Part shown: piece by piece, positions 3,690 to 54,689 of the stretch
Position numbering within the stretch: position 1 is the stretch's first letter
Layout of the letters: each line of letters begins with the position of its first letter
NCBI RefSeq assembly: GCF_032191835.1
Contig: NC_083237.1
Location: forward strand, 42,036,001-42,100,000
Length of the DNA: 64,000 bases
Direction: 5' to 3'
Source: Heteronotia binoei
Lineage: Eukaryota
Notes under the pieces: model-generated
What the model saw: only the letters and a program-made list of their open reading frames with translations
Databases searched by the model: none
What the model was told of the DNA's origin: nothing
Position numbers and translations under genes: made by a program

Positions 3690-3990
3690 ACAGGAAAGGA
3701 AGGTGGTATCACTGAGGGAACACCAGATGAAACCAAAAGTCTTTAACAGCCAGTGGAAGATCGTAACAGAAGTGGCTGGATGAGCTTCCTTGGCAGAATT
3801 CCAAGTTTTGGTGCCATGACTGAAAAGGCCATCTCCCAGTCTTTCACCTGTCTAACCTAAGAAATCAGGGGCACCTGAATCAGGGTCTCAGAAGATAATC
3901 ATGCCAGTTCACTAAGTTTATAAGGTAACAGGTGATCCTTTAAATATGCTTGTCTCAGGGCATATGAAGCTTTAAAGATCAACACCAAAA
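3690..3990 (-). mobile_element. Old L2-like LINE 3' fragment
   Basis: Resembles the L2 3' region as I recall it (gctttaaagatcaacaccaaaaccttga on plus); strongly decayed. Confidence 0.45.
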
Positions 3991-5023: not shown

Positions 5024-6406
5024 ATGTCAGGAAGAAAGGGGTCTGGTAAATCCAATGGGAAGCAGCCTGTGCCAAAGGCCCCTAAGGCTCTGGCTAAGAG
5101 GCCCCCACCCCCTTTGTCTTCTTCCGATGAGGAGGATGACAAGGCAGTTAATGCTAGCATAATGCAAAGGCTGCTGGCACTGGAGGAGGCGACTGGTATT
5201 CCTCCTTCTGAGGGGGTAGGAGTGGACAGGGCTTCAAAAAGGGCACTCCAACCTAATGCGTTAACCAGGTTGTCTATTCTTGAGGGCAGGTCTGGTGAAT
5301 TCATCACTGGTGGTGCCATGGGTTTCTGTGGTTTGGATGGGAGATCAGTGTCATCGGCAGGAGCTACTGGAACGTGGTCAACGCTGGTGCCTGTTGGATC
5401 TGTTGGTAAGGCTGGGGACATGTCACAGGTGTGTGCTGGGCTGGCTTGGCCTTGGGGGCCTTGGGGACATGCCTTGCCGGCTGGGCAGGGCATCCCTGCT
5501 GTGAATGCAAGGTTTTCTTCTCCCACAGGCTTGGGCTTGTTGTCAAATTGGGTTTGGCCGACTGGACAGGGTGGCCCTTGTGGCACTTGGCTGGGCATTG
5601 GGCAGCAGGGTATTGCAGGCTCTTTTATGGGGGGTTGGGGCACCCCTTCTCCTTATAGGATGGTTCCTTTTACCACCTTACATTTTAAGGATGTAGCTTT
5701 GCCTTTGGGGGACCATTTGCTGCCTGCAACAAGGGACAAAATCCTAATGGAGGAATACGTGGATATTTTCTCCCTCCTCTTTCAGGAGTTGGAAAAAAAG
5801 GACAAGGAGAACCTAGATGAGAAAGAAAAAGAAAAGCTGAAGAAGCGCAAAATGGAGCAGACTTGGGCTAATTGGCTGCCTGGGTTTTTTATCTACGCTG
5901 GGGTGATTGTGCGGGCTCAGCTTTGGAGGGCTGTTGCCCTTATCCAATACATGGATATAATTTACAAGGGGTACACATCTTTCAGCGGGCCTGCCTGGAT
6001 TCAATACGATGAGGAATTCAGGATGAGAGCTGCATTGTATCCTTCTCTCCAGTGGGATTGTATTCACCAGCAGCTGTGGCTGCAGGTCATGTCTCCTGCA
6101 TGGCCAAACTTAGGTGACTGCTCTGACAGCAGTCATTTGGTGGCTAGGTCAGCTGCAACTTCCTCAGGTTCAGCAGCCTCTTCCTGCAGTGCTGCGGGGC
6201 AGGCATTTCAACCCCGCCTGCTTTGTTGGGAGTATGGTTCTCAGGGAGTGTGTAGCAGAAAGACTTGTCAGTTCAAGCACGAATGCCCCATGTACGTAAG
6301 AATCAAAAGAAGCCAGGAGGAGAGGGAGGGAGTTATCAGGCTGGAAAAGGGGCCCAGTCCAATAAAGGTGGGTCCTCTTGAACAATGGCTGTCCAGGTAC
6401 CTGTGA
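5024..6406 (+). pseudogene. YR element A ORF1 (gag-like, C3H zinc finger)
   Basis: MSGRKG...KQP basic N-terminus, conserved LGDHL..ATRDKIL..YVDIFSLL / WANWLPGF / WIQYDEEFR block, CWEY-x4-C-x4-C-x3-H finger; C-terminus runs into the RT frame after a lesion. Confidence 0.85.
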
Positions 6407-7955
6407 AGGGCTGACAGTGTTTACCTGCTAAAAGGTTTTAAGTTCGGTTTTAGCATCCCTTTTCAGGGGCCACAGGTTCCATTTATGTCTGGGAATCTTA
6501 GTTCTGTTAAGGGTTTAGAGCAGGTAATCAAAGATAAGATTGCCAAGGAGTTGGCTGGGGGCAGGGTTTTGAGCCCATTTCCCCATTCCTCTGTGCATAA
6601 CCTTAGGGTTTCCCCCTTGGGCGTGGTGCCTAAAGAAGGCACCTGGGAAATTTCACTTGATTCACCATCTTTCCTTCCCTAAAGGGAAGTTCGTTAATGA
6701 TGGGATTCTGGAGCATTTATGCTCTGTTAGGTATACCAGCTTTGATCAGGCTGTAGCTGTGGTACGACGCTGCTGGGTGGGTGCAGAGTTGACAAAATGC
6801 GATATTAAATCTGCATTTTGCCTTTTACCAGTTCATCCTGCTGATTTTGAGCTCTTGGGATTTTCCTTTGAGGGTCAATTTTACATGGACAGAGCATTGC
6901 CAATGGGCTGCTCTGTATCATGTTCAGCTTTTGAGTGTTTCAGCACATTCTTGGAATGGGCTGTTCGCGAAAAAGTGGGTTTACAGGATGTCATTCATTA
7001 TTGGGATAACTACCTTTTTGTGGGTCCTGTGGGGACTGGGCGTTGTGTACAGCTGCTGTCTGGTTTTATGGAGCTGGCTGCAGAACTTGGGGTTCCTTTG
7101 GCTCAGGAAAAGACAGAGGGTTCGGCCCAAAAACTGATCTTTTGGGGGATTGAGCTGGATACCCTGGGGCAGCTGTCTAGGATACCTTTCAAAAAACTGG
7201 TATATTTAAAGAGCAGGATTCATTCCTTTCTTCTTAGATGGAAGGTCTCCTTGATTGAGTTGCAGCAGCTGGTTGGGCATCTTAACTTTGCTTGCAAAGT
7301 GGTTGCCCCTAGGCGAGCCTTTCTTCATAGACTCTGTGACGCTATAGCAGGCTTACGCTTGCCTCAGCATAGAACATGGGTTACCAACAGCATGAGGGAA
7401 GATTTGGGGGGTTGGCAAGAATTTTTGGAGTCCTTTAATGGGATCTCCTTTTGGAGAGAAGACATGAGGCTTGAGGCTGAACTCCAGGTCATATCTGATG
7501 CTGCTGGATCTTTGGGTTTTGGAGTCTATTTCTGCGGACATTGGTGCGCTGACAGTTGGCCAGACTCCTGGATGCAGGCGGGAGTGAACTGAGATCTTAC
7601 GTTTCTTGAGTTCTTTCCCATTCTGATTGCAGTTTGGCTGTGAGGGATGGATATGGCTAATCGCAAAGTTCATTTTTGGTGCGATAATATGGTGGTAGTC
7701 CATGTCATTAATTCCCTTTCATCCAAATCCCAGTGGGTTATGAGGTTGGTGAGGGCCTTCACTCTGCGTTGTCTGCGGCTTAACATATTGTTTTTAGCCA
7801 AGTATGTTCCTGGGATGAATAATGGGGTGGCTGATGCTCTCTCTCATAAACAGATGGAGAGGTTTTGTCAGCTGGCCCCAGATGCTGATCAAAAGCTGGC
7901 GTCAATGCCCCAGGAGCTAGGGTTGATTGGAGAGCCGAGGCCTGCAGAGCGATAG
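6350..7955 (+). pseudogene. YR element A RT/RNase H (frameshifted)
   Basis: SPLGVVPK, IHHLSFPKG, CDIKSAF, LPMGCSVS, decayed YxDD (HYWDNY); RNase H motifs SDAAGS, WCDN, VADALS. Confidence 0.9.
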
Positions 7956-8130
7956 GCCTAGCTATTGTGCCTAGCACCAGGAAGTCTTACGAATGTGCTG
8001 TGCGGTAGTTTGAGGACTTTAGGGCTGAGGTAGAGTATCGCATTGTTTGGCCCCTCCTGGTGAAGCAGTTGCTTCACTACTGTGCTTCTCTACGAGGTAA
8101 GGGACTGGCCATGTGATCCATTAAGAGGCG

Positions 8131-8915
8131 TGTAATGTACTGAGTTGTGAGATGGTTCGAAGGCAATATGCTTTATTCAGTGGTACATTACAAGAGAGGG
8201 AACATGCCCCCCAGTCTGACCAGTTCAATCCCGACCAGTCAAACCTCCCGCCACAGATGTAGCTCGCTAGACACCCTGCCCATCAAGATCTGTGGCGGGA
8301 GGTTTGACTGGTCGGGATTGAACTGGTCAGACTGGTTGTCCGGCCCCTGCTACTCTTCTGGTGTCCTTACTCTTGGGGGGTCACCCCCGCCCTGGTGCGG
8401 CTCTTCCACCCGATCGGTCGGAAGGGTCGGCAGAGGCGGGGTAGCTCTCAGCGTGGGTGCAGCTGCTGGTTCCTCCTCGTTCCGTACTGCAGCCGGCTCT
8501 TCCGGCAAGGTACGGTGGCACATCTGATCTATATGCCTCCGCAGGATTTGGCCCCCCTCCGTTGAGACGTCGTAGTGGCGGGACCCAGTCAAGTGCAGCA
8601 CCTGACCCACTACCCACTCTGGGCTGCTGGCATAGTTCCTTGCATATACCGGATCCCCCGGAAAGAACCCCCTAGCCGCTTCCCTGATTTTGGGACAGCT
8701 GCGGAGATTGGTGGCCTGGTCAGGATGCAACCGGTCCAACCTTGTGATCAGCTTCCTTCCCATTAATAACTCTGCTGGGCTCACCCCCGTGACTGGGTTG
8801 GGGGTGATTCAATTGTCAAATAGGAAGGCGGCCAGGCAATGGTCCCAGTCCCCCTGTACTATGCGTCCCAGGGCCTCTTTAGTGGTGCGTACCATCCGCT
8901 CTGCTTGGCCGTTGG
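8131..8915 (-). mobile_element. Ty3/Gypsy fragment: integrase C-terminal part plus LTR remnant
   Basis: Minus translation NGQAERMVRTTKEAL...SPAELLMGRKLITRL...PGDPVYARNY; 8131-8192 is bounded by a 10-bp inverted repeat TGTAATGTAC/GTACATTACA and has AATAAA on minus; it interrupts the YR ORF at 8130/8131. Confidence 0.85.
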
Positions 8916-9209
8916 TGGGACCCTGCAGCTATCGAGAGGGCACGCTATAAGGCTAATAAGGAAATTAGGTCTGTTGAGACCCCTAGCCCTGACCAGGCCG
9001 CACTTTTGGGTGCCCTTGCCATTTCTATTATTATGTTCAATAAAGTGGCCCTTAGTTATTCCAATGCTTTGTGTCTGACTCTTCATTCTGATTTGGGGGG
9101 GGGCAAACAGCCTCCTGGTGTAGGAAATAACACCTCCCCTCATGTGTCCCAGGCTCTTTTCACTTCTGAAAAGAATCAGAAGGAGCCTCTCCTCTGTCAC
9201 ATGACAGTT

Positions 9210-9415
9210 CTGTGTCCCCTCTAAGCTGAGTTAATGTGAGGTAGCTCACAGTTTTTTAGCCTCCAGCCTACAAATTTTTGTCTTAACTCAGGAAGAATGG
9301 CCTCAGAGCATACTAATTTATGCAGTAGCCATATTGCTCATTCACAACTTTAATGCCAGTAGCCTACAAAATAGATTTTTTGCTCACAAGACTCCACAGT
9401 TTACAGGAAGCATTG
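9210..9415. mobile_element. Old hAT-like MITE (CAATGTTCCCTCTAAGCTG-type ends)
   Basis: Imperfect terminal inverted repeats ctgtgtcccctctaagctg ... cagtttacaggaagcattg; no TSD found. Confidence 0.55.
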
Positions 9416-12631: not shown

Positions 12632-13573
12632 TTAAGATAGAAATTTAGTCATGGTCTTTCTAAAAGCCTCTTTAAATTCCCTGTTTCTCAGTGTATATAT
12701 AAATGGATTGATCATGGGAGTCAAGATTGTGTAGAAAACAGAAAAGACTTTGTTCAGATCCTGCAGTTTCTTAGTCTTTGGTAATATGTACACAGTGATG
12801 AGGGTTCCATAGAAAATAGAGACCACAATAAGGTGAGAGGAACAAGTAGAGAATGCCTTGCTCCTGCCACAGTTTGAAGGTATTCTCAAAATGGTGTTGA
12901 TGATGCATACATATGAGGCCAGTGTGAACAACAATGGTGGCAGTGTACATACAGAACCCAAGATGGTCATCACCATTTCTGTCTGCTGAGTGTCACTGTA
13001 TGAGAGCCTTAACAATGGTGCATAATCACAGAAGAAATGGTCAATTTCATTGGGGCCACAGTAGTTCAACTGGGAAGCAAAGAATGTTGTAAATGCACTA
13101 GCCACAATGCCAATCATCCATGAAGTAATGGACAATTGAACACACATCTTGTTATTAATGAGGGTAACATAATAGAGTGGTTTGCATATAGCTACATATC
13201 GGTCATAAGACATTACAGACAAGAGGTAGCTCTCAGCTGTAGCCAAAGTAGCAAAGAAATAGAACTGGATGAAGCATCCACTAAAAGAAATCCTATGATA
13301 GTCACTTATAAAGCTGGCCAAAATCCTAGGAAGGATTGCTGAAGTGTAGCAAGTCTCCAAAATGGATAAGTTGGTCAGAAAAAAGTACATTGGCTTCTGA
13401 AGGTGAGAATTAGTCAGAACTACTGAAGCTATAAGAATGTTCCCAGTCATTGTTACCAGGTAAACTGTGAAAAACACACCAAGGAGGAGATGCTGCTGTT
13501 CTGGAAGAGTCTTGAATCCTATGAGGACAAAGTCAGTGACACTTGTCTGATTGCACCAGTGTGTCTTTGCCAT
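12632..13573 (-). CDS. Olfactory receptor (close paralog of the 1487-2470 gene), 313 aa, intact
   Basis: PMYFFL, MSYDRYVAIC, KAFSTCSSHL, PMINPFIYTLRN; upstream acceptor atttggcag. Confidence 0.97.
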   Translation of the reverse strand: MAKTHWCNQTSVTDFVLIGFKTLPEQQHLLLGVFFTVYLVTMTGNILIASVVLTNSHLQKPMYFFLTNLSILETCYTSAILPRILASFISDYHRISFSGCFIQFYFFATLATAESYLLSVMSYDRYVAICKPLYYVTLINNKMCVQLSITSWMIGIVASAFTTFFASQLNYCGPNEIDHFFCDYAPLLRLSYSDTQQTEMVMTILGSVCTLPPLLFTLASYVCIINTILRIPSNCGRSKAFSTCSSHLIVVSIFYGTLITVYILPKTKKLQDLNKVFSVFYTILTPMINPFIYTLRNREFKEAFRKTMTKFLS

Positions 13574-18217: not shown

Positions 18218-19748
18218 ATGGCCCCCAAGAAAGGCCAAGGAAAGCCCAAGGGCAAGCAGCCTTTAAAGACTGCACCAACGAGGCCTGTTGCAGTGGATCG
18301 CCCTGGGGAAGAGGAGGAGGCCAATACCAGGCAGGCCATAGTTGATAGGCTTGCCGCCTTGGAGCGGCAACATGGGTTGGTTCCCGGGTCTTCTGGTCCG
18401 GCACGGGGGCACAAAGCCGCACGGACATCCACCAGGGCCTTTGAACAGGAGGTCCTGGCTCGTCTTTCTACTCTGCAGGACATGTCGGCCCAGCCTGGCC
18501 CTTCGGGTGGGCCCAGCCAAGAGCCACCCGATAACACCATGGATTCAGAAGCAGAAGGTAACCCCTCGGAGGGGCTTGCTCGCCCAGGTCGAGGCGGCAG
18601 CTCGGCGCCTATTGTGTGGCGGTTGGTGTGGATGATTCGGACGGTAAGCAAGGGCGGCCGGGTAACTCCGGTGTTTGGCCTTGGGGCGGTTGGGGCCCCC
18701 TTTATTCGGCCGGACCAGCCGTTCACCCGCCTGTGTTGGGCACGGGAGCAACTGGGGGGTCTTTGGGCTTTCCAGGAGCGATAGGCAGCTTCGGTCCTTT
18801 CGGGCAGGGGCAGATTCTGCCTTGGGGCCCGTCGCAGGTGTCGGCGACGGCCTCTACTTCTTCTTCATCACTGGAGGCCCCGAGTCAGCAGTCCTCCAGC
18901 GGGTCTCTGCCATGGGGACAGCAGTGGGGTAGTCAATGGTCCCCCGGATCGCCAATTGCTCAGTGGGGGGGATGGAGTTGGCCCACGACCCCCTTTGGGT
19001 CAGTACCCTTCCAATGTCGCCCTTTTGGCGACACGGCCATGCCGTTAGAGGATCACTTGACCGTGGCCACTAGGGAGAAGATTCTACGTGGGAAATATGT
19101 CGACGTTTTTAGCCTTCTTTATCGGGAGCTCGAGAAGAAGGATAAAGATGAATTAGACGAAAAAGATAAGGAAAAAATCAAACGCAGAAAGGTTGAGAGG
19201 AACTGGGCAAATTGGTTGCCCCGGTTCCTGATTTATGCTGGGGTTATAGCGCGTGCACAGCCTTTATGGGCGGCACCGCTATTCCAGTATTGTGACATCG
19301 TGTACAAGGCTTACACGGATTTCTCGGGTGCAGCGTGGCTGCAGTATGACAAGGAATTCTGAATTAGGGCTGCTCTGAACCCCGCCATCCCTTGGGACCA
19401 GATCAACCAGCAGCTATGGCTGCAGCTTATGTCCCCAGCCAAGCCCAACACTGGGGACAGGTCTGACAGTGGCCACCTTGTGAACAAACAGGCGAGCATG
19501 TCGGGTCCCCATGCAGCAGCGGGCAGTCGGTTCAACCCCAGCTTCTGTGTTGGGAGTACACATCCCAGGGGGTCTGCAACAGGAAAGCATGCAAATACAA
19601 GCACGAGTGTCTGTTACACGGAGGTTTGCATGCACTGTCAGAGTGCAACAAGTCCAAACCCCGCGTGGGGGGTAAGCGGCCAGGCGGTGGCAGGAACACC
19701 CAAGCTGTTAACAAAGGGTCCCAGACCCATCAAGGTGAGGATTCTTAG
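18218..19748 (+). pseudogene. YR element B ORF1 (gag-like), frameshifted
   Basis: MAPKKGQGKPKGKQP...DRLAALE; conserved EDHL..ATREKILRG.YVDVFSLL / WANWLPRF block; decayed finger region. Confidence 0.85.
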
Positions 19749-21323
19749 GAACCTTTTGGCCAATTATCCCAAAGTCAGGGATGGGGTATATTTGTTGGAG
19801 GGTTTTCTTTATGGTTTTCGTATTCCATTTCAGGGGCCCAGAGGCCCCTGTATGGCCAAGAATTTGCAGTCTATCAGGGGTATGGAACAGGTGGTTAAGG
19901 ATAAGATTGGGAAGGAGTGCAAGGAGGGTCGGGTATTAGGCCCTTTTGACTCACCCCCAGTCCCCAATTTGCAGATATCCCCTTTGGGGGTAGTGCCTAA
20001 AAAAGCGCCCGGGGAGTTTCGGTTGATTCACCACCTTTCCTACCCAAAAGGCGGGTTTGTGAATGATGCCATTCCAGACTCCCTTTGTACAGTCCGGTAC
20101 ACCTCCTTCGACCAGGCAGTTAGGGTCGTTCATAGGTGCGGAGTTGGGGCTGAAATGGCGAAATGCGACATCAAGTCGGCGTTTCACCTGTTGCCGGTGC
20201 ACCCCCACGATTTTGAACTCCTTGGTTTTAAGTTTGAAGGGAGGTTTTATATGGACCAGGCTTTTGCCTATGGGGTGTGCTATCTCTTGTTCAGCTTTTG
20301 AACGTTTTAGCACGTTCCTGGAATGGGCTTTGCGTGAGCGGTCTGGCTCCGCTAATACGGTTCATTATTTGGATGTTTTTTTGTTTGCGGGCCCACGGGG
20401 GTCAGGGCAATGTGCCCGATTGCTGCATTCCTTTTTGCGGTTGGCGGAGGACCTTGGTGTCCCCCTCGCCCACGAAAAGACCGAGGGCCCGACTTCAGTT
20501 TTGACTTTTTTTGGGCATCGAATTAGACTCAGTGCAGCAGGCTTCTAGGTTGCCGGCCGAAAAAATCAATGGGTTAAGGCAGAAACTGGGAGCGGTGAAA
20601 GGCAAGCGTAAGATTTTGCTTTTGGAGCTTCAGCAGATCGTGGGCCACCTCAACTTTGCCTGCAAGGTTGTGGCACCGGGGAGGGCATTCTTATGGCATC
20701 TGTGTGACGCTACGTCCGTGTTGCAGATGCCCCATCATTGGGTCAGGATTACCCAGGGAATGAGGCAGGATCTTGAGGTCTGGGACCATTTCCTGTCTGA
20801 CTTCAACGGGGTGTCTTTCTGGCGTGAGGATATGAGGATCGAGGCTGAGCTTCAGATCACATCGGACGCTGCAGGTTCGATCGGTTTTGGGGTTTATTTT
20901 CGGGGTCACTGGTGCGCTGAGGGTTGGCCCGCTGAATGGCTTGCCAGTGACCTGTGCTGTAATTTGACTTTTTTGGAATTTTTTCCAATAGTTGTAGCAG
21001 TTCAGTTATGGGGTGAGGACTTGGCCTATCACGTCGTACATTTTTGGTGCTACAACCTGGCCGTCGTTCATGTGATTAATACCCTGACTTCCAAATCGGT
21101 TCCTGTTATGCGCCTGGTTAGGGCATTTACTTTACATTGTTTACATTTGAATATTTTATTCCTTGCTAAGCACGTGCCCGGTGTGTGCAACGGAGTTGTG
21201 GATGCTCTGTCTCGTCGGCAGATGGAGCGATTTCAACTCCTGGCACCAGAGGCCGACCTCCTGCTGGCTCGGATGCCCCCAGAGATGTGGCGGCTTGGAG
21301 AGTTGAGGCCGACTGGGCAATGA
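19700..21323 (+). pseudogene. YR element B RT/RNase H, frameshifted
   Basis: SPLGVVPKK, CDIKSAF, LPMGCAIS, HYLDV (decayed YLDD), SDAAGS, FLEFFP, VDALSRR. Confidence 0.92.
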
Positions 21324-22210
21324 TGCTAGCTTTGGCGCCTTCTACCCGGAAGGCCTACGATCGCTCTGTTGAGCAGTTCCAGGCCTTTAGGGAGCAGGTA
21401 GGGTTGGCCGACCGTTGGCCCGTACCAGTGTCCCACCTTATGCAGTTCTGTGTTTTTCTGAAAGGTAAGGGGCTTGTGGTTAAGACTATTCGAGCCAAGC
21501 TGGCAGCCCTAGCGTTCACTTGTAAAATAAGAGGTTTACCTGACACTTCGGACGATTTCAGACTATGTAAGATGTTGGAGGGTTGGGCCTGCGAACAGGG
21601 GCCCCGGTCTGACACCCAACAACCCTTTTCTCTTTCAGTCTTGAGGGGTCTTAAGGCTGTATGGTCTTCAGTCTGTTTTTCAGAGTTTGAAGCTGTATTG
21701 TTCCAGGCGGCTGCGATGACTGCCTTTTTGGGGGCCCTCAGGGTTAGTGAGTTGGTGGTCAGCTCATGAAGGGATCGCTCCAGGCGTGCCCTACAGTCTG
21801 GTGACTTAAAAATTTGGGGGGACCACGTAGCCATTAAGGTACGCAAGTCCAAGACCGACCAAAGACAGAGAGGTATGTTTATCACCTTGGGATCGTGTCT
21901 TGATCGGAAAATTTGTCCAGTGGTGGCACTGAAAGACTACATTGCTGTTCAGGGAGACGAGGTGAGTCCTTTATTTTGCCATGAGGACAGGTCTCCGCTG
22001 ACCAAATTTCAATTTTGGTTCATAACCAGCCGAGCCTTGGATAAGCTAGGCCTTGGTGGCGTACGGTTCAGGACCCACTCTTTTCGTATCAGGGCAGCAT
22101 CTACAGCCGCTGCCATGGGGTATCCGGAACCTGCCATTCAGCACGTGGGGCGGTAGAAGTCTACGGCATACAAGAGTTATGTCCGGCCTATTCTTCACTG
22201 CCGGCGCTAG
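21290..22210 (+). pseudogene. YR element B tyrosine recombinase (in-frame stops)
   Basis: LALAPSTRKAY, LRVSEL, KSKTDQ, THSFR, GR*(W), AYKSY; TGA at 21767 and TAG at 22154. Confidence 0.92.
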
Positions 22211-22253
22211 CTTGTTACTTTTATTCTTGGTTACTTTGTTCTTTATTTTTCAG
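22211..22253 (+). promoter_or_regulatory. Candidate 3' splice acceptor for ORF4 (element B)
   Basis: Long T-rich tract ending ttttttcag|GTGCTGTGGC; the same junction occurs in element C. Confidence 0.65.
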
Positions 22254-22855
22254 GTGCTGTGGCGCAGGGCAAGAGAAGGAGGATTTTGATCGCCAGCCAC
22301 AGCATGATATTTTGGGCTGCCCACCAGGCTTGGCGTTCACCCATTGGATTGCAGTTGGGCGTCAGCAAGTGGGCAGTCGTTGAGTGGCAGGGGTGTCGTG
22401 GTCTCCGTTGGGATGGACTCCTGCCTCTTTTGTTTCAGGGGAGGAACGGTCCTCCGCCTCAGATTCTGGTGATTCACCTTGGGGGTAACAATCTTGGCCT
22501 GGTGAAGGGGAGGGCCCTGTCACTCCAGGCGATCAAAGACTTCAAGGTGATACAGAGCAGGTGGCCTGAGGTGCTAATTTTGTGGTCCACCATCCTTTCT
22601 CGCCGGGTGTGGAGAGCGGCTTGGGACCCTGCTGGGGTCGAGCGAGCTAGACGTAAGGCCAACAAGGCGATTAAGAAGGCGCTTTGTGGAGGCCTAGGCG
22701 TGTATCTGCCCCACCCGGCTATTAGGTCAGATAGGGCGGACCTGTATTGGCAGGATGGCATCCACCTGTCCATAGTGGGCAACAGGGCGTTTTTGCTTGA
22801 ACTACAGCTGGGGCTTCAACTGGCTTTAGGCCAGCTGGTGGGCCCAAGTGCCTAA
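22254..22855 (+). CDS. YR element B ORF4, SGNH/GDSL-hydrolase-like
   Basis: Open frame with block I-like SHS, GxRG, LVIHLGGNN and DGIH; begins at a splice acceptor; no ATG between the YR stop and block I. Confidence 0.8.
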
Positions 22856-23606: not shown

Positions 23607-24542
23607 TTACTCTGTTGCCAAGAGACTGTATCTTTTGATTAACTTCTTCATGGAGCTCTTAATTTCTTTGTTCCTCATTGTGTAGATCACTGGGTTTAAC
23701 AAAGGAAAGATCACAGTATGGAAGACAGCAACCACTTTGTCCAAGGGTAAAGGTTCTGAAGGCCGTGTGTAGAGGTAGATGGCTGGGGTGAACATCACAA
23801 AGACAACAATGATATGCGTGACACAGGTGGAGGAGGCTTTACTCCTTCCATGGGATACACTAGTTCCTAACTTGATTAAAAGAATAGCATATGAGATGAG
23901 CAAAAGTATAAAGGCTGTTAATATAACCAGCCCATTGTTGATGAAAGTCAGGACCTCTACTCTGTGAGTATCAGTACAGGCCAACCTGATGACTTGATGG
24001 ACATCACAGAAGAAGTTGTCTAAGATATTGGGTCCACAGAAGGAGAGCTGGTGGGTCATAGTTACAAGGATAATAGCATGAACAAATCCTCCAGTCCATG
24101 ATGCCCCAACCAAGATGCAGCACATGGTTCTGTTTACAAGGTACATGTATTGCAGGGGTCGACATATTGCCACATACCTATCATAGGCCATGGCTATCAG
24201 TAGGAACATCTCACCTGCTCCCAAGAAATGCAAGAAAAAGAGCTGGCACATGCATCCACCATAAGAGATTATTTTGTGCTGGCTAACAAAGTCAGCCAAC
24301 ATCTTTGGTGGTATAACAGAACTGTAGCAGATGTCAAGGAAGGCCAGACTGGCTAGGAAAAAGTACATTGGGGAGTCCAGCTGGTGGTCCATCCAAATGG
24401 TAAGAATTATAAGGATGTTCCCAGGCAGGATCAGTGAGTAGAAGAGAACAAATATGAGAAATAGGATAAACTCGACTTCTTTAACTTGGGATAGTCCTAG
24501 AAGAACAAATTCAGACACACCAGAACTGTTACTCTGTTCCAT
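23607..24542 (-). CDS. Olfactory receptor, family 4-like (OR4N-like), 311 aa, intact
   Basis: PMYFFLASL, MAYDRYVAIC, FFCDV, KASSTCVTH, PLLNPVIYTMRN; start placed at MEQSNSS because an acceptor (ttttggcag) lies 16 nt upstream. Confidence 0.95.
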   Translation of the reverse strand: MEQSNSSGVSEFVLLGLSQVKEVEFILFLIFVLFYSLILPGNILIILTIWMDHQLDSPMYFFLASLAFLDICYSSVIPPKMLADFVSQHKIISYGGCMCQLFFLHFLGAGEMFLLIAMAYDRYVAICRPLQYMYLVNRTMCCILVGASWTGGFVHAIILVTMTHQLSFCGPNILDNFFCDVHQVIRLACTDTHRVEVLTFINNGLVILTAFILLLISYAILLIKLGTSVSHGRSKASSTCVTHIIVVFVMFTPAIYLYTRPSEPLPLDKVVAVFHTVIFPLLNPVIYTMRNKEIKSSMKKLIKRYSLLATE

Positions 24543-25699
24543 GTTGCTGGAGTATACACTGCCAAAACAAAAAAGAACAACAAGACAATAATCAGTACAG
24601 ATCTGCACGTATAAAAAGAAATAACCTTTAAATAGTTCAGCTCAGTTTTATTACATAGGAGCAATGGCTTTTACAAACAATAAAAACATTTAAACATAAA
24701 ATCAGATCAGAGAGTATCAGTTTAATCTGAAACGGAGTTAGAGACTATTCCCTACAACTCATTTGCGTGTATGTAAAGTGCCAGCAAGTCACAGATGACA
24801 TATGGCGACCCCATAAGGTTTTCAAGACAACTGATTTAAGCTGAAGTGGTTTTCTGTTCCCCTCTTCTTCAGAGTTTTCCTTAATGGTCTCCCATCAGTC
24901 TCCAAGAACTGACTAGATCTGGCTGTACTGGACCATTGCACATCCCTCAACCGATTGAGATGGGCTTTAATTATACTTATATAAAAAGTATATGCCTAAC
25001 ATTTCTAAATACTTCCTTAAATGTTCTGGGAAAGAAATTGTTAGTTGAATTTAATCAATAGCCTTTAATTATTAGCAATGCTTCTGATTTGGGGCTATTT
25101 CATTGTTTTTTACAGTTACTATTAGCACATAACTGCAAATTTAAGGAAAACAGCTACATCATTTTAACCAACCCAACCACTTCTTATGATAAACAACATC
25201 AATATTTTACATTTCATAGAACTTGCTCAAGAAAAATATAGATGCTATCTAGATCCAGCAAGTCAAAGAAGGAAACTCCCATAGGTAACTAAACCACACT
25301 CATATGTATGCAGCTCAATAATATTTTTTTTACAGCTTATTAAATTTCATATTTGGTTTTCATACAAGAAAACTTGACTGACTTCAAATTTGATTTTAAA
25401 TTAATTCATCTCCTATATATGGTATTTCACACACACACACACACTATTAAAGGACATGGGGGTATGCTTGATAGCTACCTTAGCAAGGTGTACTATAGTA
25501 CTGTCAGCCTTATGACCTTTGGTAACAGTTTACCTTTCAACTTTTAGCAGATGAACAATCTTAATTTAGATCATCCCTCCTTTTTTTATTATGGTCACTG
25601 TCAGATTTGGAAATCTGTGTTTATGAAACTAAGGTTGGATATCTCAGGGCACAAATAAACAAGAAAGGTGCACACAATTGACTTTAATATTCATATCTC

Positions 25700-36065: not shown

Positions 36066-37004
36066 CTAACCTAGCTGTGTCTTGTGTTTGCTCAGAGTTC
36101 TCCTCCAGGCCATCTTTACTTCTTTGTTTCTCAGGCTGTATATAAGAGGGTTAATGAGGGGTGTTAGGACTGTGTAGAAAACAGAGAATACTTTGTTCAG
36201 TTCTTTCAGCATTTCTGTTTTGGGTAGGACATAGACAATAATGATTGTCCCATAGAAAACTGAAACAACCACAAGGTGAGAAGAGCAAGTAGAGAAGGCC
36301 TTTTTCCTTCCAGTCTTTGAAGGGATTTTCAGAATGGTCATAATGATGCAAACATATGATGCTATGGTGAACATGAATGCTGGGAAAGTGCAGACAGATG
36401 CCAGAACTGTTAATGCGAGCTGTGCCTTGTATGTGTCAGTACAGGAAAGCTGTATGATTGGTGTGTAATCACAAAAGAAATGCTCTATTTCATTATGGCC
36501 ACAGAAAGTTAACTGAAACACAAAGACTATCAGTACTGTGTTTTCCACAAAGCCCCAAAACCAAGAGGCAGCCACCAGGAAGAGACAAACCTTGTTATTC
36601 ATAATAGTCATGTAATGCAGGGGTTTGCATATTGCAACATAGCGATCATAAGACATTGCTGAAAAGAGATAGCATTCTGTTGCTGCCAAAGACCCAAAGA
36701 CCCAAAATTGTGTAATGCAGGCATGAACAGGAACGGCTCTGTTCCCAGTCACGAAACTAGCCAGCATTCTTGGCCATATGGTGGAAGTGTAGCAGACCTC
36801 TAAGAAAGAAAGATTCCCCAGAAAGAAGTACATGGAGGTGTGAAGGTGTGGATCAGTCACAACAAGGAGGATTATGAGGATGTTCCCAGATATGGTCATG
36901 ACATAAATGATGAAGAACAGGAAGAAGAGCAGAATCTGCAGAAATTCCTGGAGATCTCCAAATCCCAGAAGGATGAATTCTCTTGTGATGGTTTGATTTT
37001 CCAT
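36066..37004 (-). CDS. Olfactory receptor (family 11/6-like), 312 aa, intact
   Basis: SMYFFL, MSYDRYVAIC, KAFSTCSSHL, PLINPLIYSLRN; start at MENQT with an acceptor (tttgactctag) about 26 nt upstream. Confidence 0.96.
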   Translation of the reverse strand: MENQTITREFILLGFGDLQEFLQILLFFLFFIIYVMTISGNILIILLVVTDPHLHTSMYFFLGNLSFLEVCYTSTIWPRMLASFVTGNRAVPVHACITQFWVFGSLAATECYLFSAMSYDRYVAICKPLHYMTIMNNKVCLFLVAASWFWGFVENTVLIVFVFQLTFCGHNEIEHFFCDYTPIIQLSCTDTYKAQLALTVLASVCTFPAFMFTIASYVCIIMTILKIPSKTGRKKAFSTCSSHLVVVSVFYGTIIIVYVLPKTEMLKELNKVFSVFYTVLTPLINPLIYSLRNKEVKMAWRRTLSKHKTQLG

Positions 37005-37912
37005 TGTAGTTCTTTCACATATTTTGCTTTCTAGAGTCAAAGATAATAAAAATCAGCCTTTATTTTAAGTTGATTGAAAACAAATACCATCAGAGAAAGA
37101 CGATGGAAGGAAGTCATAGGATCCAACCCATACAGCAAAGCCATATGTAACTGCAAATCACTGGTGTGTATGTGTAATGTGCTTTGAATCTTGGAATGAA
37201 GTCTTCATAATAAAACACACTGAATGAAGCTGCAGTACTTGCTTAAATATGGTCTGGGGAGGAGACCACAGAAGTGAGGCTGCATGTGTGAATGGAGGTG
37301 AGAGATATATGATACATGAAAAATGCAGGGATTTGGTGGTGGTGGTGGTGGTGTCTTCCCCATTCAAACCCAACCCTCGGAGCCCCACACTATTTCCATA
37401 GCAATTGGCATGTGATACCATTTAGATTCATGACCAGCTTTAAATACATTTTAAACCTCTGTGAAAAGGAGATAAACATGTCAGGCAAATTGGCATTTTT
37501 AATCCCATTCAGGAAAGGAGACTCTTCAATATGGAGAATGGCAAAAATGTTAATGGTAGGAAAATTATGCTCACCTGAAATTTTAAAAGCAGGGAAAGCC
37601 TAGAAGTTGTTTCCTTAATAAGAAAGTATCTATTTAACAAATCAGTTATCTTTTTTATATCATTTTGAATCCCAGTTGCGGCTGCAAGTTTTCATTGCCT
37701 CCCATTATTTAATGCCTTCTTCTTCTTCTTAATATATGCCCCAATTGGATTGCTTAAAGAAAGGAAATAAACAGTCATTTTCTAATTAACCTCATGAGAC
37801 AGTGTTTGCACTCCTGTTCCCAAAAGATCTTTCTAATTTTTTGAGACATATATTTCCCAATATAACTATTTGTTAAGAAGGATAGGCGAATTATTAATGG
37901 CAGCCAGGGTTG

Positions 37913-39388
37913 ATAAGAGAAGCCATGTTGGATCAGGCCAACGGCCCATCAAGTCCAACACTCTGTGTCACACAGTGGCAAAAAATTTTATATACACACA
38001 TACACTGTGGCTAATAGCCACTGATGGACCTGTGCTCCATATATTTATCTAAACCCTTCTTGAAGGTGGCTATACTTGTGGCCGCCACCACCTCCTGTGG
38101 CAGTGAATTCCACATGTTAATCACCCTTTGGGTGAAGAAGTACTTCCTTTTATCCGTTTTAACCTTTCTGCTCAGCAATTTCATCGAATGCCCACGAGTT
38201 CTTGTATTGTGAGAAAGGGAGAAAAGTACTTCTTTCTCTACTTTCTCCATCCCATGCATTATCTTATAAACCTCTATCATGTCACCCCACAGTCGACGTT
38301 TCTCCAAGCTAAAGAGTCCCAAGCGTTTCAACCTTTCTTCATAGGGAAAGTGCTCCAGCCCTTTAATCATTCTAGTTGCCCTTCTCTGGACTTTCTCCAA
38401 TGCTATAATATCCTTTTTGAGGTGCGACGACCAGAACTGCACACAGTACTCCAAATGAGACCGCACCATTGATTTATACAGGGGCATTATGATACTGGCT
38501 GATTTGTTTCCATTTCCCTTCCTAATAATTCCCAGCATGGCGTTGGCCTTTTTTATTGCAGACGCACACTGTCTTGACATTTTCAGTGAGTTATCTACCA
38601 CGACCCCAAGATCTCTCTCTTGGTCAGTCTCTGCCAGTTCACACCCCATCAACTTGTATTTGTAGCTGGGATTCTTGGCCCCAATGTGCATTACTTTGCA
38701 CTTGGCCACATTGAACCGCATCTGCCACGTTGACGCCCACTCACCCAGCCTCAACAGATCTCTTTGGAGTTCCTCACAATCCTCTCTGGTTCTCACCACC
38801 CTGAACAATTTAGTGTCATCCGCAAACTTGGCCACTTCACTGCTCACTCCCAACTCTAAATCATTTATGAACAAGTTAAAGAGCATGGGACCCAGTACCG
38901 AGCCCTGCGGCACCCCACTGCTTACCATCCTCCACTGCGAAGACTGCCCATTTATACTGACTCTCTGCTTCCTATTACTCAGCCAGTTTTTGATCCACAA
39001 GAGGACCTGTCCTTTTACTCCATGACTCTCAAGTTTTCTAAGGAGCCTTTGATGAGGAACTTTATCAAAAGCTTTCTGGAAGTCAAGGTAAACAACATCT
39101 ATCGGGTCGCCTTTGTCCACATGTTTGTTCACCCCCTCAAAGAAATGTAACAGGTTAGTGAGGCAAGATCTTCCCTTGCAGAACCCATGCTGAGTCTTCC
39201 TCAATAACCCGTGTTCATCAATGTGCCTACTCATTCTGTCCTTGATAATGGTTTCTACCAACTTTCCCGGTATTGAAGTCAGACTGACTGGCCTGTAATT
39301 TCCCGGATCTCCTCTGGAACCCTTTTTAAAGATGGGGGTGACATTTGCTACCTTCCAGTCCTCAGGAACGGAGGCAGATTTCAATGAA
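37913..39388 (-). mobile_element. CR1 LINE, 5'-truncated, RT frame open
   Basis: YLDFQKAFDKV, GVPQGSVLGP, FADDTKL; 3' UTR ends ...gatccaacatggcttctctta. Confidence 0.97.
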
Positions 39389-44304: not shown

Positions 44305-44439
44305 GGTTGAACCTGGTGGAAAAATCCAAAACAAGCAGTCAATATTAATATTTACATCTCGCTCCATTGGCCAATCTATAGACATTTTCCAAATTGTGCT
44401 GGTCACTGTGTATAAGCTCACTGGTACTTTGGATCCAGC

Positions 44440-49632: not shown

Positions 49633-51172
49633 ATGGGCCCTAATAAGGGCAAGGCCCTTCTAAGGGCAAGCAGCCGGCCAAGGCCGCTGCAAAGCGTAGA
49701 AATGCTGCCCCCCCGGGGAGGACCTGGATAGTACCGTTATGCGTCAGGCTATATTAGATAGGGTCCGGGTGATGGAAGATGAACAGGGTGCGTCAGCATC
49801 ACAGGCGGTCTGGCCTGGGTGCCACAGCGCCAGCGGAAGGTCAGGGACTCTCACCTTTGAGAGAGAGTTGCTGTCTAGGCTTTCTGTTTTACAGGAGAAT
49901 ATGGTCACCAAGTCAAGGGCCGAGCGTAGTCAAGACGCTGATTCAGCCAGGGAAGCGGTGCTGTGTGATGAGGGCGGCGACCATGAGGATGGTGAGGACC
50001 AGCAGCAGACGGTGCAACCCGTGGCCGTCGCGGTGACACGGGCAGCGGAAGAAGATAGGGCTACGATGACTTCTCAACAAGGAAATTGGCCTTGGGGGGT
50101 TTGGGGCCCGTATGTGCTGCAACAGTCTGGGGGGTCTGGACAAGGGTCCGCGCCCTTCGAGGGCAGGCAGTGGCCGCCTCCGGCACAGCCGGGACCATCA
50201 TAGGCGACAGATAGTTTCCCAATGGGGTGAGCGCAGGGTTTGCAGGCGACTTGGGGTCAGGTGCCCGCAGTTGCGGGAGGGGCGGCGGCCGCTCAGGGGT
50301 CTGCAGCAACTGCGGCAACCGCCGGAGTTCTGCCATGGGGTGGCCAAATGCCAGTAACTCATCCATTCAGATGGCCTGCTGTGACTTGCAACCCTTGGGG
50401 CTACCCTTACCACCCATACGGGTCTGTCCCCTCGTTATCTATCCTGTTTGGAGACCCAGCGATGCCTTTGGGGGACCATCTCACTCCCGCAACAAGGGAG
50501 AAGATCTTGAGAGGGGAATATGTGGACGTTTTTAGCCTCTTGTACAGGGAGCTTGAAAAGAAGAGTAAAGAGGAATTAGATGAGAAAGAGAAGGAAAAGC
50601 TTAGGCGGTGGAAGGTAGATAGAACCTGGGCCAACTGGCTTCCAGGTTTTCTCATCTACGCGGGGGTTATTGCCAGGGCACAGCCAGGTAGGGCCGCCCC
50701 CTTGTTCCAATACTGTGACATCATCTACCGGGCCTACACCGATTTTGCGGGGCTGGTCTGGTTACAGTATGATGAGACTTTTCGCATGAGGGCGGCCATT
50801 AACCCATTGTTGCCGTGGGACCGAATCAACCAACAGTTGTGGTTACAGCTGATGGCCCCGGCTAAGCCCAACCTCGGGGACAGAGCAGATAGTGGGCATT
50901 TAGTTTATAGACAGACAAGTACCCCAACAGCCCGCTTCACGGCGGGTCAGCCGGTTCAACCCCGGCTGTTGTGTTGGGAGTATACCTCACAAGGAGTCTG
51001 TTCTAGGAAGGTATGCAAATTTAAACATGAGTGCCCGCTATGTGGTGGCTCCCATGCCTTCTCAGCATGCAGCAAGGTAAAGCTGAAAGGCAGGCCCAAG
51101 CGCCCCAGGGGCGGCAGCGGCTCACAACCTCTGGGTAAAGGGTCCCAGCCCCATTTGGCTGAGGGTTCTTGA
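49633..51172 (+). pseudogene. YR element C ORF1 (gag-like), frameshifted
   Basis: MGPNKGK..KGKQP..RQAILDRV; conserved core; CWEYTSQGVCSRKVCKFKHECPLCGGSHAFSAC finger. Confidence 0.88.
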
Positions 51173-52751
51173 GCAATTCCTCGAGAAGTATCCAAGGGTC
51201 GCCGACAGGATTTATTTGTTGGAGGGATTCACATTTGGTTTCCGGATCCCGTACATGGGGCCTAGGGTCCCCTCAGTGGCCTCCAATTTGCGTTCCATTG
51301 TTGGTATGGAGCAAGTGGTGAGGGACAAAATTGCAAAGGAATGTGCTGAAGGGCGAGTCATTGGTCCTTTTAGGGCCCCGCCAGTGCCTAATTTGAGGGT
51401 CTCCCCATTAGGCGTTGTCCCTAAAAAGGCCGCTGGGGAGTTCAGGTTGATCCATCATTTGTCTTATCCCTCCGGGGGGTCGGTGAATAATGGCATTCCC
51501 GATCACCTATGTTCTGTTCGTTATACATCGTTTGATCAGGCGGTTAGAGTTATTCGGGGTTGTGGGATGGGGCGGAAATGGCAAAATGCGACATTAAATC
51601 TGCATTTCGGCTATTGCCGGTTCACCCTGAAGACTTCGAATTGTTAGGTTTTCAGTTTGAGGGCAATTTTTATTTGAATTGAGCATTGCCGATGGGATGC
51701 TTGGTGTCTTGTGCCGCCTTTGAGCGATTCAGCTCATTTTTGGAATGGTTGTTGAGGCATAAGTCAGGCCGTAATGAGGTTGTGCACAATTTGGACAATG
51801 TCCTGTTCACAGGCGCGCCCGGTTCTGGGTGCTGCGCTTGGCTGCTGGACCTTTTTACATGGTTGGCCGGCGAGCTGGGGGTACCTCTGGCTCACGAGAA
51901 AATGGAGGGTCCAGCAACTTGCATCACATTTTTGGGCATTGAGCTGGACACTGTGCAGCAGACTTCTCGGTTGCCGGAGGAAAAGGTCCACCAGCTCAGG
52001 GCTAGGCTAGTGGTGTTAAAGGTGAAACGAAAAGTTTCACTCCTGGAGCTGCAGCAGCTCGTGGGGTATTTAAATTTCGCTTGTCGAGTTGTCGCCCCGG
52101 GCAGGGCATTTATACGGCGCCTCTGTGATGCCATGGCGAACCTCCATTTGCCTCACCATAGGGCTCATATAACGGAGAGCATGTGTAGAGACCTGGAAGT
52201 CTGGGAGGAGTTTTTAGAGGTATTCAACGGGGTGTCTTTTTGGAGAGAGGATACGAAGGTCGAAGCCAACCTCCAAATTTCCTCCGACGCTGCCGGCTCT
52301 GCTGGTTTTGGCGTCTTTTTTAGGAGACAGTGGTGTGCGGAGCTGTGGCCAAAAGATTGGCTCTGTAGTGGCATTTGTAGAAATCTGACCTTTTTGGAAT
52401 TCTTTCCGATTGTGGTGGCAGTTTTTCTATGGGGGGGAGCAGTTATCTAACCGGGTCGTACATTTTTGGTGCAACAACCTGTCGGTCGTGCACGTGGTTA
52501 ACTCATTGTCTTTTAAGTCTAAGCCAGTTATGTCATTGGTCAGGGTTTTTACTCTACGTTGCCTCCAGTTAAATATTTTGTTCTTAGCCAAGCATGTGCC
52601 GGGAGTTAATAACGGGGTGGCGGACGCCCTGTCTCGCCGGCAGATGGAGCGATTTCGCCTGTTGGCCTCGGAGGCCGATCCTCACCTGTCACGGATGCCA
52701 CCCGACCTTTGGCAGCTTGGCAGGCTGAAGCCGGTAGGGCAATCCTCCTAG
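51130..52751 (+). pseudogene. YR element C RT/RNase H, frameshifted
   Basis: SPLGVVPKK, MPMGC, HNLDN (decayed YLDD), SDAAGS, FLEFFP, WCNN, VADALSRR. Confidence 0.92.
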
Positions 52752-53627
52752 CACTGGCCCCAAGCACCCGGAGGGCTTATGACCGTGCAGCTTACCAGTT
52801 TAAGGTATTCCGCCATTGCTCGAGGCTGGGAGGCATTTGGCCCATCCTGGTTGCACACTTGATGCAGTTTTGCATCCTGCAAAAATCCAAGGGTATGAAG
52901 GTTAAATCTATCCGGGGCCAGTTGGCGGCTTTAGCATTTTTCAGTAAGGCCCAGGGTTACCCGGCCGCTGGGGATGACTTCAGAATTAAGAAGATGCTTG
53001 AGGGTTGGTCTAGGGAGCATGGGGCGAGGGCCGACACTAGGCAGCCCATATCTCTTTCCATTTTACAGGGTCTGGGCGGTGTTTGGCCTGAGGTTTGTAG
53101 CTCAGATTATGAGGTCGTCTTGTTCCATGCGGCTGCACTCACGGCCTTTTTCGAAGCCCTGCGGGTCAGCGAACTAGTGCAGTCCTCACGTAGGGACCCA
53201 TCTGTCGCTGCCTTGCGGAGCGGTGACGTTTTGTTTAAGGAGAAGCATGTTTTGCTGCATGTACATCAGTCCAAAACGGATCAACGTCAGAAGGGTACAA
53301 CAATTAAGCTTGGCCCTTGCGCAGAACCAGGGCTATGTCCGGTCCAAGCCTTGTTGGAATATGTAAAGGCCCGTGAGACCGCGCAAGGCCCCTTTTTCCG
53401 CCATAAGGATGGGTCCCCCCTCACAAAATACCAGTTTTGGGCTGTGACCGCCCATGCGCTGGGGAAACTAGGATTGGGGGGGCTTTAAGTTTGGGACCCA
53501 TTCCTTTCGGATTGGGGTGGCATTGACTGCCGCAGCCATGGGATATCCGGGACCTACCATCCAACGGGTAGGATGGTGGAGGTCCGCGGCTTATCGTGCT
53601 TATGTGCGTCCATTGCTGTTCCCCTAA
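52709..53627 (+). pseudogene. YR element C tyrosine recombinase (frameshift near 53485)
   Basis: LALAPSTRRAY, LRVSEL, QSKTDQ, THSFR, AYRAY. Confidence 0.92.
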
Positions 53628-53675
53628 TGGGGGTTTTTGTGGTTTGTTCTGTTCTGACTATGTTTTTCGTTTCAG
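53628..53675 (+). promoter_or_regulatory. Candidate 3' splice acceptor for ORF4 (element C)
   Basis: Branch-like CTGAC at 53654-53658, pyrimidine tract, tttcag|GTGCTGTGGC. Confidence 0.65.
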
Positions 53676-54276
53676 GTGCTGTGGCTCGTCATGGGAGGCT
53701 GAGGATCCTCGTATGCAGGCACAACATGGTTTTTTGGGCAGCCCACTTCGCCAAAAGATCGTCAGTCGGCTCACAATTGGGGTTGAGCGAGTGGGCTGTG
53801 GTCGACTGGCGGGGGCGACGGGGGCTCAGATGGTCTGGGCTGTTGCCATTGTTATTTGATGGAAGGGCCTGTCCCCCGCCCCACATTTTGGTGATCCACC
53901 TTGGAGGGAATGACTTGGGCCTGTTGAAGGGGAAGCCCCTGTCTTTGCAGGTGATCTCGAACCTGCGGGTCATCATGAGGAGGTGACCCGGGGTCCGGAT
54001 CATTTGGTCTGCTATCCTGCCTCGCAGAGTCTGGCGTGCCACTTGGAACCCTGCCAGGATCGAGCGGGCCAGGAGGAAGGCGAATCGGGCCCTGCGGTTG
54101 GCCTTGGATGAAGGTCTGGGCACCTTCCTTCCACACCCTGGTATTAGGGTGGATAGGTCTGAGTTATATCGGCAGGATGGCGTCCATCTGTCCGATGAGG
54201 GAAATCGGGCCTTTTTGTCAGATTTGCGGCAAGGTCTTCGGGAGGCTCTGGGCCTCCCGGGAGTCGCGAATGCCTA
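53676..54276 (+). pseudogene. YR element C ORF4, SGNH-like (in-frame TGA at 53984)
   Basis: RHN (decayed block I), GRRG, ILVIHLGGND, DGVH. Confidence 0.8.
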
Positions 54277-54689
54277 AGCAGAGGCTTGGCATTTGCGGTG
54301 GCGGAATTTGCAAGGGGGTCAGACCTTGCTGGTGAGCACCCAGGCCTAGGCACCTGTGTTATGCATCCAATCCGTAGGAAAGGCAGATGGGCTTCACGGC
54401 TCAATGTCCTGAAATACGGATTGGGTTTCATGCCTCCCTTTAGTCGCCCCCTTCTGGTGATCGGGGCGGCGGTGAGGGGAGGGCATCTTTGGTCTGCCAG
54501 CCCGGTTCTAGCCACAATTGTATGGCTGGGACTGGGGTTGGGTGCCTCGCCCTTATAGGACTTGGCGGGGTCAGGGTGACCCCAGGGCTCGTCCTATGTC
54601 AGTTTACCTTGCCAGGTTGTGTTAAATGTTAATAAAGTGGCCTGTTTTCCCAATTACCTTGTCTGTCTTTTTATTCCGTATGGGGGTGA

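Follow-up and report, generated by a model that had tools for sequence, protein, structure and literature searches.

Conserved splice signals point to a spliced Gag-esterase fusion in SGNH-bearing Ngaro retrotransposons

Introduction

How does a tyrosine-recombinase (YR) retrotransposon express a hydrolase gene that lies behind all of its other genes and, in some copies, is open without a start codon ahead of its first catalytic motif? The question is raised by a 64-kb stretch of the genome of the gecko Heteronotia binoei (NC_083237.1, positions 42,036,001 to 42,100,000, forward strand), which we call the window and in which all coordinates are counted unless a locus handle precedes them. The window is an olfactory-receptor gene cluster with transposons between the genes, three of which are, on a tblastn map, plus-strand Ngaro-type YR retrotransposons, here A, B and C. 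Behind the YR gene, as in a vertebrate subgroup of Ngaro, stands an open reading frame (ORF) for an SGNH hydrolase, ORF4, recognised by a Pfam Lipase_GDSL_2 match in copy B; ORF4 of copy C is 65% identical to it.

Ngaro elements with a fourth, SGNH-hydrolase ORF were reportedly described by Goodwin and Poulter in 2004. In Xenopus, the elements DIRS-53_XT and DIRS-54_XT are Ngaro elements with such an ORF, said to have 'no proven function' (PMC9210276); the same article offers no expression mechanism for the hydrolase ORF and never mentions splicing or introns. A sequence-only reading of the window had suggested that ORF4 is spliced to the N-terminal part of Gag. Following up this idea in the window and in related elements, we find that living SGNH-Ngaro elements very probably express ORF4 from a singly spliced subgenomic mRNA that joins a donor in gag to an acceptor at ORF4, a reading that we base on sequence comparison and on public gene models.

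Results

The putative acceptor lies in the short spacer between YR and ORF4. In copy B, the YR stop codon TAG (22208-10) is followed by an in-frame, T-rich spacer of 43 nucleotides (nt) at 22211-22253, whose AG occupies 22252-53; the junction reads TTTATTTTTCAG/GTGCTGTGGC (slashes mark splice junctions), and exon 2 would begin at 22254. In copy C, a TAATG overlap (53625-29) leads into a T-rich tract of 48 nt (53628-53675) with AG at 53674-75, the junction being TTTTTCGTTTCAG/GTGCTGTGGC and exon 2 starting at 53676. The same CAG/GTGCTGTGGC ends the tract in both copies and enters the SGNH frame in phase 1, exactly as the sequence-only reading had described it, and in alignment A2 the AG is one of few invariant columns (7/7 sequences). 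That the acceptor is common to B and C while the frame of ORF4 relative to YR differs (in frame after TAG in B, a TAATG overlap in C) was also correctly seen, and frame analysis confirms that copy B has no ATG ahead of catalytic block I, its first ATG encoding the Met directly after the catalytic Ser. Splice-site strength was judged by pyrimidine-tract ranks and motif counts. When the roughly 300 AG sites of an element are ranked in this way, the acceptor tract comes 2nd to 4th in five of the seven elements (47-59% G+C overall); in copy B it holds rank 2 of 324.

The candidate donors of A and B lie within gag, some 127-140 codons from its start. Copy A has TTG/GTAAGG at 5405/5406, in phase 1 relative to the gag ATG at 5024, and copy B has ACG/GTAAGC at 18643/18644, also in phase 1 and 3′ of a frameshift in gag. 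When conservation among relatives was checked, all four sites (two donors, in A and B, and two acceptors, in B and C) aligned exactly with the annotated splice sites of intact elements (alignments A1 and A2). In alignment A1 the GGTAAG of A and B is retained within an otherwise poorly conserved stretch of gag, which points to constraint at the nucleotide level and not just on the encoded Gly-Lys. The sequence-only reading had assigned a phase-1 donor to all three copies; this holds for A and B but fails for C. Its proposed site in copy C, ATG/GTGAGG at 49991/49992, does exist. However, the homologous donor position is about 20 codons further downstream, and the proposed site stands ahead of the VAVAV motif, which is conserved and in all relatives comes before the donor (A1). 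At the homologous position (about 50046-50056) copy C reads GAAGATAGGGCTA where relatives have GATG/GTAAGGCT, and the family donor has thus been lost. The GTGAGG site, being non-homologous, is probably a chance match, given the number of G/GTRAG motifs per element (2-6).

Gene models of related elements join the same two sites. With ORF4 of copy B as query, we retrieved RefSeq proteins of Eublepharis macularius that, at 337-347 amino acids (aa), exceed ORF4 by about 140 aa. Their N-terminal third is that of Gag, with MPPKKG.G..KGKQPAKR, an acidic SSSDDE patch and two RLxALE-type helices, and at the fusion junction (..VAVAVDxPEGDG/AVVRRGRxRILICGHS...) DG/AV matches the donor plus acceptor of copy B. 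The spliced product that had been foreseen, a KGKQP N-terminus with RLxALE helices and an SGNH domain, is exactly the protein that these models show. Searches with a fusion protein as query revealed full-length fusion models in eight squamate genera, among them Eublepharis, Heteronotia, Anolis, Pogona, Elgaria, Hemicordylus and Rhineura; those of Anolis sagrei, Pogona, Elgaria and Hemicordylus were found with the fusion query or with profile A3, a 13-sequence alignment of fusion proteins. Dozens of XP accessions are among these models, for example XP_054838220.1 (Eublepharis), XP_062833270.1 (Anolis carolinensis) and XP_061463786.1 (Rhineura); XP_053548213.1 is a counterpart from the frog Bombina.

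We dissected 14 loci from Eublepharis, Heteronotia, Anolis, Rhineura and the frog Bombina. In the NCBI gene models, all 14 have a canonical GT-AG, phase-1 intron that encloses the C-terminal part of gag (gag-C), the reverse transcriptase (RT)/RNase H gene and YR. Ten of them (Eublepharis L001-L006, Anolis carolinensis L009 and Rhineura floridana L010-L012) are two-exon models with a single phase-1 intron of 3451-3583 nt, whose donors are G/GTAAG followed by C, G or A, G/GTAAAG or G/GTGAGT and whose acceptors consist of a pyrimidine tract plus YAG. The same gag-to-ORF4 intron design is present at L013 of Heteronotia binoei, within the 3.45-3.58 kb of the squamate loci, and, with an intron of about 3.4 kb, donor CACG/GTAAGC and acceptor TTACAG/GAAGAG, at L014 of Bombina bombina, whose Gag N-terminus differs from the squamate KGKQP type. 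Loci L001 and L002 are young and intact, with all four ORFs open and with A1 and A2 repeats of 173 nt that are 100% identical; the design is hence one of functional copies and did not arise by decay.

Two of the models contain further exons or introns. The Bombina model (L014:3001-8290) has an additional gag intron (3202-4179) ahead of the conserved G/GTAAGC donor, and in isoform X3 of Rhineura floridana (P0013) an exon from the N-terminal part of YR separates Gag-N from the esterase, suggesting that sites inside the intron are alternatively spliced. A contig with the contiguous spliced form, as a cDNA or a retro-copied intronless element, was not found among four candidates: the Logan protein P0008 starts in the translated T-tract and looks unspliced, the contig of P0021 (L016, Logan) is unspliced, P0082 is another genomic gene model, and P0207 comprises ORF4 only.

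The spacer could alternatively serve translation instead of splicing, ORF4 being read from unspliced genomic RNA by termination-reinitiation after YR or from an ATG or signal peptide of its own. An in-frame ATG in or before the spacer does occur in copy C and at L003/L004, L006 and L009, and the resulting peptides are hydrophobic. These ATGs, however, are at non-homologous positions, and there is none before block I in the intact L001, in L010/L011, in copy B or in the unspliced L016. A hydrophobic peptide of Phe, Leu, Val and Ser is, moreover, what any T-rich tract encodes, and the signal peptide that the sequence-only reading had allowed for in copy C is such a translated tract and is not conserved. 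That reading had itself named the pattern that would contradict splicing, a conserved ATG or signal peptide beside freely varying GT and AG; the relatives display the opposite, with GT and AG conserved and ATGs absent or non-homologous. The frame of ORF4 relative to YR also differs among copies, whereas the AG and the splice phase are constant. Taken together, these observations make translation from unspliced RNA very unlikely.

Within the window, the gene order gag-like ORF, RT/RNase H, YR is the same in A, B and C and co-linear with intact gecko elements (tblastn maps). Copy A has a Pfam RVT_1 match, and YR was assigned in the window copies by homology to the third ORF of relatives, not by a Pfam match. 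The three are decayed Ngaro-type tyrosine-recombinase retrotransposons inserted between olfactory-receptor genes. Around B and C, neither a repeat search nor blastn found split direct repeats, which fits old, decayed copies.

Copy B carries all four genes, from the gag ATG at 18218 to the ORF4 stop at 22855. Its exon-1 equivalent (18218..18643, plus strand, as are all features of the three copies) runs from the gag ATG (MAPKKGQGKPKGKQP...) to the donor ACG/GTAAGC and is broken by a frameshift between the two (three-frame translation, alignment A1). The intron equivalent of 3610 nt (18644..22253) holds gag-C, RT/RNase H and YR (tblastn map, ORF list, alignment A2), and gag, RT and YR are all disrupted by frameshifts or stops. 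Exon 2, the SGNH esterase ORF4 (22254..22855), is open for 200 codons (Pfam Lipase_GDSL_2, E 3.5e-5) and shares 58-68% identity with gecko proteins; it retains the block I Ser, block III GGN(N) and block V DGIHLS.

In copy A, the exon-1 equivalent (5024..5405) extends over 127 codons plus 1 base from the gag ATG to the donor (translation, alignment A1). It encodes a basic N-terminus together with an acidic patch (SSSDEED) and a pair of RLxALE-type helices; the N-terminus is 48% identical to the Heteronotia fusion protein P0074. The intron equivalent (5406..8134) includes gag-C, RT/RNase H and the start of YR (tblastn map, ORFs, Pfam RVT_1). Near 8134 the copy is interrupted within YR by unrelated sequence, and it consequently has no acceptor and no ORF4. 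The unrelated sequence (8140-9230) contains a minus-strand ORF (8350-8784) whose peptide resembles the C-terminal part of an integrase of long terminal repeat (LTR) elements; this ORF has no Pfam match at E 1e-3.

Copy C is complete in outline but broken, extending from a gag ATG at about 49633 to the ORF4 stop at 54277. Its exon-1 equivalent (49633..50056) is frameshifted (three-frame translation, alignment A1), and the intron equivalent (50057..53675) comprises gag-C with a zinc finger, RT/RNase H and YR (ORFs, tblastn map, alignment A2). Exon 2 (53676..54277) is, by its translation, a dead SGNH ORF4, with an in-frame stop at 53984-86 and with CRHN as block I, in which the catalytic Ser is replaced. 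About 400 nt 3′ of ORF4 is a tandem pair of 52-nt units, 98% identical, at 54690-54794.

Several points weigh against a functional gag-to-ORF4 splice. None of the three window copies can make the fusion protein; they are dead relics that keep splice signals, and the window feature is a fossil, since A lacks its 3′ half, exon 1 of B is frameshifted, and in C the donor is gone and ORF4 is dead. The acceptor pyrimidine tract is weak at some loci, ranking 17th in L003 and 57th in L010, and chance alone yields 2-6 copies of G/GTRAG per element. Automatic prediction produced the fusion gene models, some of which could propagate one another via protein-homology support. These last points also feed the suspicion that GT/AG sites and fusion models alike are annotation artefacts, a predictor having chained two ORFs over chance motifs, with ORF4 expressed in another manner or not at all; the whole of the protein evidence is indeed automatic models, and the donor motif is indeed frequent by chance. 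An artefact is nevertheless hard to reconcile with the recurrence of the same positions and of phase 1 in families that are only 40-65% identical, and in a frog, or with acceptor flanks that differ between lineages (CAG/GTGCTG in geckos, CAG/AACCC in Anolis, CAG/ATCGC in Rhineura). At many loci several isoforms are named, and to our knowledge Gnomon issues such sets only from transcript evidence. The catalytic residues of ORF4 are conserved across families, so that ORF4 must be under selection and expressed somehow. We consequently regard the artefact as very unlikely. Splicing of element RNA in vivo is what we infer from splice signals that are observed at fixed positions and in a fixed phase, are conserved across families and taxa, and are used by public gene models.

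The predicted fusion protein combines a poorly ordered N-terminal half with a well-defined enzyme domain. An AlphaFold2 (AF2) model built on A3 has helices at residues 34-52 and 74-89 (predicted local distance difference test, pLDDT, 57-72), a disordered segment at 92-141 and an SGNH domain at 146-333 (pLDDT above 85). The sequence-only reading had expected a coiled coil, of which only these two short helices are predicted; their dimerisation is putative. The catalytic blocks GHS, GRRG, HLGGNDLG and DG(V/I)HL vary little or not at all among the 13 fusion proteins, and the hallmarks of SGNH/GDSL enzymes are all present, with block I (GxS), block II (Gly), block III (GxND) and block V (DxxH) on a predicted alpha/beta/alpha fold; the SGNH domain of copy B keeps the Ser, the Asn and the Asp..His.

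Comparison of this domain with known structures gave different nearest neighbours by fold and by sequence profile. Foldseek placed generic SGNH enzymes at the top, with platelet-activating factor acetylhydrolase (PAF-AH) Ib and bacterial GDSL enzymes at E about 2e-7, and ranked 4c1b, the esterase of the ZfL2-1 ORF1 protein (ORF1p), 41st. With the fusion profile as query against PDB, 4c1b was the best match (E 5e-6; next 0.017); a single fusion protein searched against PDB with phmmer gave nothing useful. On this profile match, the esterase of the Ngaro fusion may be homologous to that of ORF1p of long interspersed nuclear elements (LINEs) and not purely convergent. The N-terminal module is certainly different in origin, as that of Ngaro is Gag. 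The earlier proposal of a LINE ORF1p-like architecture stands for the layout, whereas pure convergence may not.

A further view of the two splice sites comes from geckos, in which the 'isoform X1' models of DUSP12 of Gekko japonicus and Heteronotia binoei terminate in an SGNH domain. The loci (L008:14344-18021 in Gekko japonicus, L007:13406-15491 in Heteronotia binoei) share an old Ngaro insertion that is orthologous, its flanks being co-linear. The two models lead from a host exon to a cryptic acceptor in gag-N and then from the gag donor GAGG/GTAAGC to the ORF4 acceptor TTTCTAG/G, and they provide an independent hint that the gag donor and the ORF4 acceptor work. Most of the element interior has been lost at the Heteronotia locus, and the two Ngaro exons are open in both species. 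Between Gekko and Heteronotia, the SGNH exon has a ratio of non-synonymous to synonymous substitution rates (dN/dS) of 0.36 at dS 0.45, and both species have lost the catalytic His (DGVLLS). The SGNH exon may have been exapted as a dead-enzyme domain, or it may be in slow decay.

Long gene models with an SGNH domain also occur in Eublepharis, where P0085/P0211 ('serine/arginine repetitive matrix protein 2-like', about 2060 aa) have it, and in P0069 and P0070 (2677-3112 aa); in these models the domain is at the C-terminus or occurs several times. All four are probably further chimeras of host exons with the ORF4 acceptor, or read-through models.

Such chimeras raise the possibility that the ORF4 acceptor is real and strong but is usually joined to other donors, in the 5′ untranslated region, elsewhere in gag or in host genes, with the Gag-N fusion a minor isoform of no special role. 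Host genes (DUSP12 and the SRRM2-like protein) are linked to ORF4 in this manner, and there are shorter or alternative models, including Rhineura P0013 with its YR-derived exon and Bombina P0122 with an additional gag intron. Yet A, B, five gecko families and Bombina all keep the G/GTAAG donor at its homologous place in gag, and even the DUSP12 chimeras use this same donor, so a marginal role for the Gag-N fusion appears very improbable.

The remaining features of the window concern its other genes and transposons. Five intact olfactory-receptor ORFs lie on the minus strand, at 1487-2470, 12632-13573, 23607-24608, 36066-37040 and 43342-44634 (Pfam 7tm_4, E 1e-44 to 1e-53). A Copia-like Gag-pre-integrase/integrase ORF (rve, SH3_retrovirus, Pol_BBD) occupies 57806-59533 on the plus strand, and a separate reverse-transcriptase ORF (RVT_1, E 2e-36) is at 38011-39429 on the minus strand.

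Discussion

The splice that we propose for living SGNH-Ngaro elements would divide the element's coding capacity between two RNAs. The full-length RNA would be both the genome and the mRNA from which Gag, RT and YR are translated. ORF4, which in living members would have no start codon of its own, would be reached by splicing a fraction of this RNA, in phase 1, from a 5′ splice site within gag (G/GTAAG, encoding Gly-Lys, about 127-140 codons from the ATG) to a 3′ splice site that consists of a T-rich tract with YAG and lies behind the YR stop, ahead of ORF4. In this step gag-C, RT/RNase H and YR would be removed as one intron of about 3.5 kb. The first ATG of the spliced mRNA would be that of gag, and its product a Gag(1 to about 130)-esterase of about 330-345 aa, in which the basic N-terminus of Gag, an acidic patch of Ser, Asp and Glu and two short helices would precede a disordered linker and the esterase. 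The Gag N-terminus may bring the esterase to the Gag/RNA particle or to membranes, as has been proposed for esterase-type LINE ORF1p.

Retroviruses and errantiviruses make a spliced subgenomic env mRNA, and in avian leukosis virus this mRNA fuses the first few gag codons to env. The layout proposed here is the same in having a 5′ splice site at or inside gag, a 3′ site before the last ORF, the polymerase genes as intron and the gag ATG as start. It differs in that the Ngaro fusion would take about 130 Gag residues, not about 6, that the downstream ORF encodes a soluble esterase and not a membrane glycoprotein, and that Ngaro is a YR retrotransposon without LTRs or integrase. Subgenomic splicing in retroelements is therefore known already; what is new, as supported by our comparisons, would be a YR retrotransposon that yields an ORF1p-like Gag-N/esterase fusion.

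As in known Ngaro elements with an SGNH ORF, the elements studied here have the same order of gag, RT/RNase H, YR and SGNH ORF and no methyltransferase-like match, and the split direct repeats of Ngaro (A1 ... B1-A2-B2) are represented in the intact gecko relative L001 by A1 = A2 of 173 nt. The difference is the conserved gag-to-ORF4 intron that we propose. We found no description of this splice for Ngaro in the literature searched, which did not cover all key reviews, so that an earlier mention is possible.

Another close parallel is the ORF1p of esterase-class LINEs. ORF1p of ZfL2-1 dimerises through an N-terminal coiled coil, which a linker of low conservation separates from an esterase (residues 136-302); its peptides of positive charge have been credited with RNA binding, and the esterase attaches to membranes that are negatively charged (PMC3905857). 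The Ngaro fusion likewise has a positive peptide, predicted N-terminal helices, a variable linker and an SGNH esterase at about 140-330. ZfL2-1 ORF1p, in contrast, is one unspliced ORF of a non-LTR element, while the N-terminal module of Ngaro would be taken from Gag by splicing. The LINE class is defined by its position as the first ORF of CR1/L2, upstream of the endonuclease-RT ORF2, and the Ngaro esterase is the last ORF; by analogy, the fusion would work like an esterase-class ORF1p without being a member of the class. The alpha subunits of PAF acetylhydrolase Ib share the SGNH fold, with its Ser, Gly, Asn and Asp-x-x-His blocks, and are among the top Foldseek matches, but identity is 18-22%, there is no host-gene orthology and the Ngaro protein is transposon-borne. 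UniRef names some proteins of the Ngaro ORF4 type '1-alkyl-2-acetylglycerophosphocholine esterase'.

A wider picture, which we offer tentatively as a possibility that may well not hold in full, is that tetrapod SGNH-Ngaro elements run a retrovirus-like two-mRNA programme, whose second product is a Gag-N-tethered lipid esterase, specifically related to the CR1/L2 ORF1p esterase through domain exchange between unrelated retroelement classes and delivered to the Gag/RNA particle or to membranes by the Gag N-terminus, and that the exon pair has also been captured in geckos as an alternative DUSP12 C-terminus.

With a conserved intron between gag and ORF4, the means by which Ngaro expresses its orphan hydrolase ORF would be explained; as far as our literature search showed, such regulated subgenomic splicing would have no described precedent among tyrosine-recombinase retrotransposons. 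The intron would also make dozens of RefSeq 'uncharacterized protein LOC...' entries of squamates and frogs, together with the DUSP12 isoform X1 chimeras, recognisable as transposon products or captures. The ORF1p-like layout, with 4c1b as the closest solved relative by profile search, would connect retroelements of two unrelated classes through a shared lipid or membrane step, an idea that is testable in lizards with young, intact Ngaro copies. If the two-mRNA programme with a LINE-related esterase is real, lipid or membrane chemistry would be a recurrent need of retrotransposition.
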